Shown: positions 3,169 to 64,000 of the stretch, piece by piece
How positions within the stretch are numbered: the stretch's first letter is position 1
How the letters are laid out: each line of letters starts with the position of its first letter
NCBI GenBank assembly: GCA_964199315.1
Contig: OZ116706.1
Coordinates: 9,300,001-9,364,000 of the forward strand
Direction: 5' to 3'
Origin: Orbicella franksi
Taxonomy: Eukaryota
Length of the DNA stretch: 64,000 nucleotides
Notes under the pieces: generated by a model
What the model was told of the DNA's origin: nothing
Seen by the model: the letters and a program-made list of their open reading frames with translations, nothing else
The model's database searches: none
Made by a program: the position numbers and the translations under genes

Positions 3169-3283
3169 ATGGAGCGTCATCCTTTCTCTATTGAAAACAT
3201 TTTGAAAGATACACGAAGTGCTGGCAGTATTTTGAAAATAGCACCGACTTCCGAAGCGTTGGCCCTGGCTGAACGAATGGCAG
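3169..3283 (+). CDS. DMBX: Dmbx-like gene G1, exon 1 (MERHPFSIENIL...ALALAERMA)
   Basis: ATG 3169 with an open frame containing eh1-like FSIENIL and the Dmbx motif ALALAERMA. Phase-1 donor G|GTTAGT at 3284 joins in frame to exon 2. Missed by the ORF track because it is under 60 aa. Confidence 0.9.
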
Positions 3284-6200
3284 GTTAGTCAACTTCGTAT
3301 TGTCCCTTGACAGAGACCTTAAGTGTCCTGGTGCCAACGTATCCTCTTTTTAGAGCTAATACGTAGCAGAAGAAGCAGAAAAGGACACAGAGGCAGCAGT
3401 AAAGGACAGAAGGGTTAGGTGATCATGAATGGTTCTTTATTCACAATCGTTCCTTTAGAGAACGAAGTATTGTGCATTCGCGTGCCGGAAACTTTGAAAA
3501 TCTTGTTCGTCATTCGTGGAAGGAAAGATATCGCAAGCAGACGCTTTGGATTCCAAGTCGGCAAAATTCGTCTCAGAAATTCTCGAATCATTCTGTGAAC
3601 TCCCTGTTTGAGGTCTTTTCGTTTCGAAAACCACATAATCAGTGGCGTTAATGAATTTAAGGAGCCAGCAGCGTCGGATTGTATTAGGCCAGGCCAGCAG
3701 TCTCCCCCAGATCGGAAGCTTTAGGCAGTGCCAACAATTCATGGACATAGATAGAGCTGGCCTTTTTGAGCTGGAGGTATCATTGGTAAGCCCATAGCTG
3801 CGGTTATACCAAAATTTCAGACCTCTAATCTAATCTAACTAAATTCTTTTTCGATAGTAGGACCTACAAAACTAAGCAAATGTTTATGTTAATAAGAAAA
3901 TGCAGTAATTCATGCGTTAAAGAAATTGGCAGGGTTTACGCTAGACGATTGAAATCATTAAAGAAAAATGGTCGGTTTGTTTGTGGCAAGTTGGTAATCC
4001 TGAGTCTCGTGTGAAAAAGCACGCTTGCCATTGTCCCCGTTCTCAGCTGGGATTTTCGTTTTCATTTTAATTTCCTCAATCTTTTATACACAAGGGATTT
4101 TAAAATCTCACTACAAAGCAAACATGCGCCGCAGGAAAGTGTCCTTTGTTCAATTGAGTGCCATCCAGCAAAGCGCGGAACAGGTTATTTATTCATGGCG
4201 TAAAAATGGAAGCAAACTGAGTTCGTGACCGTTGACTACTTCAGAAAGCGGATGACCATTTGTACGGAAATGTGCATTGTTTAAGCGGTATCCTGAAACA
4301 AGACTTAATCTACTAAGCATTACCGAAACAAGTCAACCGCATATACCTCTGAGTAATGCTGTGGTTGAGCGACATAAAATGAAATAAAGCTTGTTCATTC
4401 TCCCTGCATGTGGGTGCTGATATTATATGTGATGAAGTCAACCAAATTTAATACTAATTTATGACAAAGGAGCGTGTGTGTTCAACTTCCATAGACACTT
4501 AACGATACTCGTCTCAACTCTGGAACAGCGATGCGACAAACTGCAACTATTAATGTCCTGATATTAAAAAAGCACACGATTTTATAAGTAAGTGATTAAG
4601 TATGACCATAGTGAGGCCGCAAATTCCAAGGGGCGTTGCCCCTGCTTACGATATGCAATGCTGATATCGCAATTTCTTTAGCACTGATTCATCGAAAGTC
4701 CCATTAATCACGATCTGGGTTTTGCCTTTGTTCGCTAGTTACTGTGCCTAATTGGAAATGTCATTTCTGACAAACTCATAAAGCCCTGTTTGCGCCCGAT
4801 CGGTACACCGTAAGTCAACACAAGAACTCTTAATCAGATTTATTAGCACATTTTGTCGGGTTGCAGGGAACAATTAATTATAGTTCTGGATAGTTCCAGG
4901 TGGTGGAGTTTACACAAGCGCTCTAACTTGATGAGAGAACTTAAATTAGCAGTTCGATTTGTGTGTACAGGGGTATTTTGTCTATTTCTATCGCATACGT
5001 TGTCTGACAGCCCCTTGCGTTCTCAAATAGCGTACAGAGAAAGCTCTTAATTACATTGGGTTATCGTCTCAGCTGTGAAGAGATACATTGATAAATCTAA
5101 TAGCTTATTCTTCGTCAATCTCAGAGCGAGACCTGCATATTTGTGTAAGTTTCCTCGTGGAGAGCTCGCCGTCGGGTTTCGTGAACTGCATCGTTTTCGA
5201 GACGTAGAAAAAAATAGACCAATCATAGGGGTGTTGACGAGCAATATTTAAGTTTAGTTGCTCCTTTTTATTGGGTAAGAATTAGCTTTTCAAGCATTAT
5301 TTGTTTCAGAGCAATAAACACTGGCGCTGACTTCATTTTGATCGAAACACTGTGTACACGTACTCTGATGCTAACGGAAGATCTGAGAAGCATGAATCTC
5401 CGTAATCAGAACCTTTTGATCAACGGTCTTTATAATCAGCGATTAGTCGTTGATTGTCTGGTTATGCTACATGCTGCAAAGGACGCCGGAAATTGCAACT
5501 AAACAGTAACAAAAGGCAGGGTGCTTTGAATGCAGAGCTGTCACATCACAAGCTGTTCCGACTTCCACCACAATTCCGAATCAAAAAACTGTATAAACAA
5601 GTGCGTTAAATTCATTTCCCAAGAACAATGATAAAGTATATAACGTCCATTTGATTAACCAGCTTTAACTGTACAAACTTATTACAAAGCTAGGTAGCAC
5701 CTGTGCATGTGGTGGGCATAAAATTGTAATCATAGCCACTGTCTTCCTAGACTCCAAAGATGTGGTCCATTTTAGATGGTAAATAAGTGCATAAGTGTTA
5801 GGCTCTTTTTTTTTTTATAGGAATATGTGAATAGACGTACCAAAGGATGATCACAAACCTACACATAGCCTACTGACGATTTTCATCTTGTCAGTTAATT
5901 TTTTACGACAGAATAAATAACCCCCTCTTCTTGAGAAAACACTTTGACCGAAAATCCGATTCTCCCAAGCGAATTAGGATGTCAGATTAGCATCCAAGAC
6001 TTTGAGAAGTCTAAGAAACCAGAACTTTGTTCCGTTTACATTTGGCTGTACGTATTCAAAAGTTTCTAGCCAAGCTGTATTAAATAAGTGTCAAGTATTT
6101 ATCTAACAGCTGTACCTGTACCAGACTGACCCAAAATAGGAAACGTTAGATTGCAAGGTGTCTATTAGTAAGGTACGTCGACAATGTAACAGCACCTTCA

Positions 6201-6676
6201 TCACATTTTTAATTTTGTTTCGTTTATCTCTAGCAAGACGTCTAACGAGACGTCATAAGTAAGAGGAGGGCGTTCGACATAGACTCGAGTAACTGTGCTG
6301 TCCATTTGTAGATCAGGAAAACTTCAGAGTAGTTTCAGTCCATCCAATGTTTACTTTGATGTATACAGATTAACAGTGGAAATTAATTTTGGATGGACCC
6401 GAAGCTTCTTGGACGATCACAAAGTTAGAATGTTGCCTAGGCTGATATGCTCAAACTATCGGTTCTCCTTTCTGCAGATTGCTATGTGTGCTCTTGTAAG
6501 TTGCTTCTGAGGATTTGGTGATATATATGTATGTCAAGGCGATATCCGTCTAGTTGACGACTTTCGTCTTTCTTGTCGTTTGTTGACGATAAGTTGTCGC
6601 AATGTTAAGAGAAATTGGAAGTTGAATGTTTGCGCTATATACTGTTCCTTACGCGATAACAAACTCTTCATTGCAG

Positions 6677-63600: not shown

Positions 63601-63874
63601 ATTATGCATGATTTTATAATTTTCGAGTATATCTGAGAAAGATAACACAATTGATTCAAATTGTTATTTGTCGCCGTTATACAAAAAAAAAACTGCTCTC
63701 TTTTTCCTAAATGATAGCGTTAGGTAATGATAATGAAGAGAAAATCATCAACGAGGGAATATTAACTTGATGTATCACAAAATTGTCAGAGCTAATATTA
63801 GGGCAGTTCACAAGGAAACTTGGTGTTACTAGCTTCAGATTAAAACGACTAATCTGATGTTGTTTCTGTTTCAG

Positions 63875-64000
63875 ATATCATATTAGAGGCACATTGTGGC
63901 TCTTCTATACCACAGCATCGTCGTACACGCACTGCCTTTAATCGTCACCAGCTAAAAGTTCTTGAAAATACCTTTTCCAGAACCCATTATCCGGATACAG
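63875..64000 (+). CDS. DMBX: Dmbx-like gene G5, exon 2 (truncated by the window end)
   Basis: Acceptor gtttcag|, reads [42 protein letters not shown]. Not in the ORF track. Confidence 0.92.

Follow-up and report, generated by a model that had tools for sequence, protein, structure and literature searches.

An old head-to-tail array of eight homeobox genes assigned to the Dmbx family in the stony coral Orbicella franksi

Introduction

To which family do five look-alike homeobox genes standing in a row in a coral genome belong, how far does the row extend and how old is it? These questions are raised by the window analysed here, a stretch of 64,000 nucleotides on the + strand of a contig of the scleractinian Orbicella franksi (contig C9:9300001-9364000, GenBank OZ116706.1, of the 497-Mb assembly GCA_964199315.1; G+C 38%, N count 0). 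Our answer, in which we have high confidence, is that the window contains the first five genes (G1 to G5) of an eight-gene head-to-tail array of the Dmbx family, produced by tandem duplications in the cnidarian lineage. Dmbx is a paired-like family of the PRD class with a lysine at homeodomain position 50; terrestrial vertebrates have a single such gene, which acts in brain patterning.

Expansion of this family in anthozoans has been reported before, as a preliminary description of the window, made from the sequence alone, had rightly stated. Six DMBX homeodomains were found in Nematostella (Ryan et al., 2006; PMC1779571), and Ying et al. (2018; PMC6214176), citing Hislop 2005, state that Nk2, Dmbx1 and Msx duplicates of independent origin are tightly linked in Acropora millepora. 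One Nematostella Dmbx lies ~98 kb from anthox7 (PMC1779807), and Hydra manacle serves as a Dmbx representative (PMC2211742). Tandem expansion of Dmbx has thus been documented before, by publications and NCBI annotations alike, and the advance made here is incremental and its novelty modest; what is new is the complete set of eight genes, their colinearity between corals, the flanking Pitx and Pax genes, the ages of the duplications and a gene model for G4 that is verified by reads.

Eight genes of one design

A six-frame scan of the window finds the homeodomain signature WFKNRRAKYRK four times (at 8682, 19769, 28982 and 54361) and THYPD five times (at 6781, 19334, 28643, 53460 and 63982, each time preceded by D(I/V)IL), always on the + strand, and five upstream exons on that same strand that end with A-L-x-(L/V)-A-x-x-(L/M)-A and then G|GT (at 3256, 13522, 26495, 52451 and 60653). 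Explicit models join these pieces into five three-exon genes (Table 1), the splice sites of which are GT-AG throughout with the sole exception of G4 intron 2, which is GC-AG. The five same-strand Dmbx-like genes with common intron positions and phases, and the counts of THYPD (all five) and WFKNRR (the four complete genes), are therefore as the preliminary description had them. The ALxLAxxLA|D(I/V)IL motif that it also ascribed to all five is recognisable in each, although degenerate in G1 (ALALAERMA) and G5 (ALSVAAHLA). For G5 an in-frame ATG further upstream, at 60500, offers an alternative start that would give a protein of 208 amino acids (aa).

The row continues beyond the window, as had been expected. 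G5, which is cut by the window end, is completed from the contig, and a search of the genome with G4 exon 2, followed by reading of the flanks, revealed further + strand copies directly downstream (G6, G7 and G8), which have the same structure and motifs. The array thus comprises eight intact head-to-tail genes in 94 kb, from 3169 to +97338 (positions beyond the window are given on the same scale, with a plus sign), encoding proteins of 190-287 aa. All eight copies share (i) a 60-residue paired-like homeodomain with THYPD, WFKNRRAK and a lysine at position 50 (K50), detected by Pfam PF00046 with E values of 5.5e-20 for G1 and 2.7e-22 for G4, (ii) a phase 1 intron within the D codon of D(I/V)IL, (iii) a phase 0 intron between homeodomain residues 46 and 47 and (iv) an N-terminal eh1-like motif of the FSIxNIL type in exon 1 (FSIENIL, FSIESIL or FSIDNIL in G1-G4, FMMENLL in G5), which the preliminary description had passed over.

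Such genes are far from scattered at random. A DNA pattern encoding WFKNRRAK occurs 14 times in the 497-Mb genome (the reversed pattern, used as a control, never occurs), and eight of the 14 sites are the array genes, a clustering far beyond chance. The other six belong to a Pitx gene, to three Otx genes and a Goosecoid (Gsc) gene on contig C15, and to one orphan exon on contig C2.

Assignment to the Dmbx family

Queried with the G4 protein, a collection of 5.8 billion proteins gave 120 listed matches that began with coral and sea anemone orthologues, after which every named bilaterian protein among them was DMBX1 (the rest being unnamed equivalents), with no Otx, Pitx or Gsc among these 120. 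The orthologues in Montipora, Actinia, Pocillopora, Porites and Desmophyllum are themselves named DMBX1-like by NCBI. This pattern is matched by the residues that directly precede the homeodomain, where the motif ALTLAERLADIILE(A/V)(R/H)YG is common to the coral copies and to the DMBX proteins of dog, shark, lamprey, lungfish, Ptychodera, Owenia and Solemya; ALTLAERLADIILE was not found in the exon 2 contexts of coral Otx, Gsc and Pitx. The likeness to bilaterian DMBX1 that had been noticed earlier, in the ALTLAERLA-DIILE flank and in the homeodomain, is confirmed: the flank is exact in G4 and G7, reads ALTLAERLA-DVIM in G6 and has recognisable variants in G1, G2, G3, G5 and G8.

Within the homeodomain, the array copies have 38-48 of 60 residues in common with DMBX, each being nearer to DMBX than to any of Otx, Pitx and Gsc (the figure for OTX2 is 31-39 of 59). 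G7 comes nearest (46-48/60), followed by G4 (43-45/60), and the idea that G4 is the most ancestral-looking copy therefore stands for the window, in which it is the most DMBX1-like, and fails for the array, in which G7 is closer. A maximum-likelihood (ML) tree of 47 homeodomains and 60 columns, which included coral Otx, Gsc, Pitx and Pax as well as human OTX2, CRX, PITX2 and GSC taken from PDB alignments, sets the cnidarian copies and bilaterian DMBX on one side of a branch with support 94/80, and unites all cnidarian Dmbx in one clade (96/91). The same tree places coral Otx with human OTX2/CRX (99/98), Gsc with GSC (97/96) and Pitx with PITX2 (100/99). In this best tree, of the kind proposed as a check on the preliminary description, the copies group with DMBX and not with Otx, Gsc or Pitx. 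In an approximately unbiased (AU) test on the 60 homeodomain columns, a grouping of cnidarian Dmbx with Gsc is rejected (p = 0.017).

Several points weigh on the other side. (i) The same AU test rejects neither a grouping of cnidarian Dmbx with Otx (p = 0.20) nor one with Pitx (p = 0.15), and the assignment therefore leans on the flank motif and on the pattern of best matches. (ii) The C-terminal OAR domain, which Pfam PF03826 detects in bilaterian DMBX1 (2.2e-05 in dog, 7e-06 in lamprey), goes undetected by that profile in all eight exon 3 products at a cut-off of E <= 10, and a custom hidden Markov model (HMM) trained on 15 distinct OAR regions of bilaterian DMBX finds nothing significant in any cnidarian copy. 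(iii) The eh1-like motif is not present in the bilaterian DMBX N-termini examined. Since the copies have no OAR and these bilaterian N-termini no eh1, the coral proteins differ from DMBX1 beyond the homeodomain region. (iv) Direct read evidence of expression is confined to G4, and we infer that the array proteins bind DNA and Groucho and have undergone subfunctionalisation. As to the second point, OAR is shared by many PRD families and is accessory to Dmbx, not defining for it. A SSSVDLWRFQAGL stretch in G7 bears a weak by-eye resemblance to OAR, is negative with both Pfam and the custom HMM, and is not claimed as such.

Could the array genes then belong to another K50 paired-like family, i.e. 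Otx, Pitx or Goosecoid, and merely resemble Dmbx? Besides the AU values for Otx and Pitx, this idea could draw on the best single-homeodomain PDB match of G4, which is OTX2 (3.9e-22), although PDB is without a DMBX structure, and on FSIDNIL, which is a classic Goosecoid/Engrailed eh1 motif common with Gsc (PMC1310626). It is contradicted by the ML tree and by the rejected Gsc placement, by the 14-residue flank motif, which is common to DMBX only, by the names of the listed bilaterian matches, and by the genome having its own five Otx, Gsc and Pitx, whose top PDB matches are OTX2 (1.2e-30), GSC (2.8e-25) and PITX2 (1.5e-31), respectively. We thus regard membership in another family as very improbable. 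Taken singly, an Otx identity was dismissed because the Otx-type signature RRERTTFT...KTKYPDIFMREEVA...RAKCRQQ is restricted to the five C15 genes and is not seen in the array copies. A Pitx identity was dismissed because the Pitx-type homeodomain (QRRQRTHFTS...RNRYPDM...RAKWRKRE) is that of the upstream neighbour, and the Goosecoid identity that FSIDNIL had prompted was given up with the real Gsc located on C15, as only eh1 is common to the two.

A subtler alternative is that a generic K50 paired-like ancestor, and not the ancestral gene of bilaterian DMBX1, gave rise to a cnidarian-specific 'Dmbx-like' family. In its favour, the copies differ from bilaterian DMBX1 by lacking OAR and by an eh1 that was either gained or retained, and the joint branch with DMBX (94/80) is below the threshold for starred branches. 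Set against this, ALTLAERLADIILE..YG is near-identical and abuts the homeodomain at the same position across Bilateria and Cnidaria, which makes convergence very unlikely, and G7 has 46-48 of the 60 homeodomain residues in common with DMBX. The chances of such an independent origin are in our estimation extremely slim, and we keep to the assignment of the array to Dmbx.

Age of the array

Tandem same-strand copies invite the suspicion of a recent, species-specific amplification in which some copies are decaying pseudogenes or assembly duplicates. Apart from the layout itself, the long branches of G1 and G6 in the homeodomain tree and the insertions of transposable elements (TEs), namely a reverse-transcriptase remnant in G2 intron 1 and a DNA transposon at 33672-36009, could be cited in its favour. 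Almost everything else contradicts it. The eight frames are open and have good splice sites, and spliced transcripts are available for G4, G5 and G7. Full-length identity between paralogous proteins is just 35-55% (65% for G2/G3), homeobox synonymous sites are saturated in every pair but G2/G3 (synonymous divergence, dS, 0.58; nonsynonymous divergence, dN, 0.023), and similarity between copies at the DNA level is limited to the homeobox exons (G2 and G3 being 90% identical in exon 2). Homeodomain dN is low across pairs (0.02-0.32), from which it follows that the homeodomains are constrained; the eight copies are intact, with homeodomains under purifying selection.

Comparison with other anthozoans points the same way. 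In Oculina patagonica (CM126639.1), each of G2-G7 has a one-to-one orthologue, with order and orientation conserved. G1 likewise has one (ACROYT_G018625, 77% identity in exon 3), the locus tags descend along the array (G018625 for G1, 623 for G3, 620 for G5 and 618 for G7), and the order from G1 to G7 is preserved. G1-type genes are found in Montipora too (as a protein named DMBX1-B-like), G4-type genes in Montipora, Nematostella, Actinia and Actinostola, G7-type genes in Pocillopora, Desmophyllum and Montipora, and G8-type genes in Porites. G3 shares 89% identity with Oculina protein P0096 and 95% with P0038, a protein from a transcript contig, and groups with Nematostella P0028, which is of the G2/G3 type. 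The G4 orthologue of Nematostella has an identical three-exon structure with the same intron positions, and another K50 gene lies 5 kb downstream of it. The G1, G4, G7 and G8 types are common to this coral and complex corals, and the G4 and G2/G3 types to it and sea anemones. Same-order orthologues in Oculina, orthologues in other coral families and the dS values refute recent amplification for the array as a whole, and we consider it exceedingly unlikely.

The array is therefore old, and the idea of a coral-specific or recent expansion had to be corrected. Its lineage-specificity, which had been proposed, holds at the level of Cnidaria or Hexacorallia, and not at that of this coral, since the types are common to other corals and, for G4 and G2/G3, to anemones as well. 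Nor did the description of G2 and G3 as a recent pair survive. Their homeodomain dS is 0.58, exon 2 is all that can still be aligned at the nucleotide level, and in Oculina each of the two has an orthologue of its own: although a full-length tree of the G2/G3 group left the branching of G2 unresolved, an exon-level comparison was decisive, the Oculina G2 orthologue being closer to G2 than to G3 both in exon 1 (86% vs 69%) and in exon 3 (59% vs 45%). The duplication therefore predates the split of this coral from Oculina, and G2/G3 is the youngest pair, yet not a recent one.

Expression and transcript structure

Raw reads of two polyA RNA sequencing (RNA-seq) runs were mapped onto 51500-56500, the region of G4. 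They fall on the exons and are absent from the introns, with 30 and 40 reads across the junction 52478|53353, and 25 and 51 across 53531|54358, which is that of the GC-AG intron. G4 is thus transcribed and spliced as modelled, GC-AG intron included, and the RNA-seq check proposed for the spliced models has been passed by this one. In both runs, leader reads overhang the acceptor 52254|52255, and their loose parts match three upstream sites, which therefore represent alternative non-coding leader exons (Table 1); G4 probably has alternative promoters. One run has an extra joint, 51611>52254, with 16 added letters, which may be a mini-exon. At 52441, all RNA reads and contigs have T where the assembly has C, a synonymous change in Ser29 of G4 that reflects either a difference fixed between strains or a variant in the assembly. 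In a third RNA-seq run, from another study, there are almost no G4 reads, a near-silence consistent with regulated expression.

Assembled transcripts bear on two further genes. A transcript-contig protein matches G7 at 100% over residues 25-287, and protein P0019, which is 99.5% identical to G5, agrees with the model in the splicing of its three exons but has a start that lies 18 residues earlier.

Other features and genomic neighbours

The coordinates of all genes and of the features around them are collected in Table 1.

Table 1. Genes and other features of the array and its surroundings (window-relative positions unless a contig is named)
Feature	Position	Strand	Basis
G1, Dmbx-like, 237 aa	3169-3283, 6677-6852, 8679-9101	+	GT-AG model, Pfam Homeodomain
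G2, Dmbx-like, 222 aa	13423-13549, 19227-19405, 19766-20128	+	Three-exon model
Retrotransposon remnant with reverse-transcriptase open reading frames, in G2 intron 1	16083-18621	-	Pfam RVT_1
G3, Dmbx-like, 213 aa	26396-26522, 28536-28714, 28979-29314	+	Three-exon model
Three alternative non-coding G4 leader exons	48660-51247; 3' ends ~48692, 49963, 51247	+	Overhanging reads, each site then GT
G4, Dmbx-like, 213 aa	coding 52355-52478, 53353-53531, 54358-54696	+	Model and polyA RNA-seq
G4 transcript	5' untranslated region from 52255; 3' untranslated region to ~55170	+	polyA RNA-seq
G5, Dmbx-like, 190 aa	60554-60680, 63875-64053, 64436-64702	+	Model; cut by window end, completed from contig C9
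G6	67894-68029, 71369-71553, 72240-72494	+	Same structure and motifs as G1-G5
G7	77910-78036, 80841-81019, 82931-83488	+	Same structure and motifs as G1-G5
G8	90282-90429, 96165-96343, 96940-97338	+	Same structure and motifs as G1-G5
Pitx	C9:9287334/9288963, 14 kb upstream of array	same as array	Top PDB match PITX2
Pax gene	~21 kb downstream of G8; paired box +118745	same as array	PF00292, E = 2e-66

Intron 1 of G2 is long (5.7 kb) because of the retrotransposon remnant inside it, the strongest part of which is at 16950-18248 on the - strand (Pfam RVT_1, E = 2.3e-35). Adjoining this remnant, two stretches within 15165-15795 resemble (74-78% identity) parts of 24933-25808, a region 0.6-1.5 kb upstream of G3. 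This likeness is consistent with an insertion that split the duplication unit.

Repeats of other kinds are present in the array DNA. A 395-bp dispersed repeat upstream of G2 (11912-12305) recurs with 92% identity between G5 and G6 (+65873-66267). Near-perfect palindromes sit in intergenic or intronic DNA, two in the window (40879-41367, with 98% arm identity, and 20449-20702, with 86%) and two beyond it (+87468-87583, 77%, and +92151-92307, 94%), and they probably form a repeat family.

The array is flanked on both sides by genes of the same class. The Pitx gene upstream has named orthologues that include 'pituitary homeobox 2' of Nematostella, Exaiptasia and Acropora, and the Pax gene downstream has a homeodomain with serine at position 50 (at +120131 and +120592). 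Between Pitx and Pax there is no other homeodomain and no long non-TE open reading frame, so that Pitx, eight Dmbx and Pax make up ten PRD-class genes in 134 kb, on one strand. Beyond Pitx, the next long open reading frame encodes immunoglobulin (Ig) and collagen domains, in a long exon at L041:1160-2305 (window-relative -28840 to -27695) with Ig I-set domains and a weak fibrillar-collagen C-terminal match.

Parts of this arrangement recur elsewhere. In Porites lutea a PAX plus homeodomain gene is found 5.4 kb downstream of the G8-type gene, on the same strand, as are G8 and Pax here. In Actinostola, Pitx adjoins an Ig-domain gene, as in the present coral, and Pitx and a G4-type Dmbx are 58 kb apart on opposite strands. 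Whether the Pitx-Dmbx-Pax block might be a conserved and co-regulated PRD-class cluster ancestral to Hexacorallia, perhaps even the remnant of an older PRD proto-cluster with an order held by enhancers as in Hox/NK clusters, is a conjecture that we put forward as doubtful. The block adds a candidate conserved PRD-class linkage group to the few that are known, such as Hbn-Rx-Otp (PMC2938728).

The genome contains a second K50 cluster, at C15:20762482-20875775 (loci L044-L049), with five Otx on both strands and Gsc (C15:20870482/20875752), which is ~22-28 kb from the nearest Otx; two of the Otx read WFKNKR and not WFKNRR. It is, like the array, a tandem expansion of K50 PRD-class genes with the homeodomain 46/47 intron, and it differs in its family, in its use of both strands and in being without ALTLAERLADIILE or an eh1-type exon 1. 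The orphan exon on C2 (C2:38723483, L043:8483-8500) encodes TWFKNRRAKWRREHR; no recognisable homeodomain exon 2 was found in the 8.4 kb upstream of it, which could make it either a relic or part of a K50 gene that has diverged.

Function, comparison and significance

How might such an array have arisen and been kept? The copies were produced by tandem duplications, one after another, in the cnidarian lineage once it had separated from Bilateria, and each of them would encode a sequence-specific transcription factor. K50 paired-like homeodomains bind TAATCC, as is established for Otx, Pitx, Gsc and Bicoid, and those of the array are predicted to read such bicoid-type sites. The N-terminal FSIxNIL could recruit Groucho/TLE and make the proteins repressors, as EH1 motifs at the N-terminus, which are also found in Gsc, bind Groucho/TLE and confer repression (PMC1310626); a literature search pairing eh1 with Dmbx returned nothing relevant. 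The paralogues may have been kept because their expression domains became partitioned, for which there is a reported precedent in Nematostella, where Dmbx1 and Dmbx2 mark tentacle-forming endomesodermal segments (bioRxiv 10.1101/2023.01.09.523347). We infer that the eight proteins most probably act as sequence-specific repressors and that their expression domains are divided.

Against known systems, the array has both familiar and distinctive traits. Bilaterian DMBX1 has the same kind of K50 paired-like homeodomain, directly preceded by ALTLAERLADIILEARYG, and is a longer protein (330-373 aa) with a C-terminal OAR and without the N-terminal eh1-like motif, whereas the shorter coral proteins lack OAR, have eh1 and come in eight copies. 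Acropora millepora is likewise a scleractinian in which, according to Ying et al. (2018; PMC6214176), independently duplicated Dmbx genes are tightly linked; the present coral, which is closer to Oculina, differs from it by the eight members, the Pitx/Pax flanks and the colinearity with Oculina. Nematostella shares the Dmbx expansion, the three-exon structure and motifs of the G4 type, and the G2/G3 type, but its Pitx is 2.0 Mb from the G4-type Dmbx on the same chromosome, compared with 14 kb from the array here.

In conclusion, the eight-gene Dmbx array offers a clean system for studying how tandem duplicates of a developmental regulator persist for hundreds of millions of years, its assets being the orthologues that correspond one to one in several coral families, the defined Pitx and Pax genes at its borders and the read-verified G4 model with probable alternative promoters.

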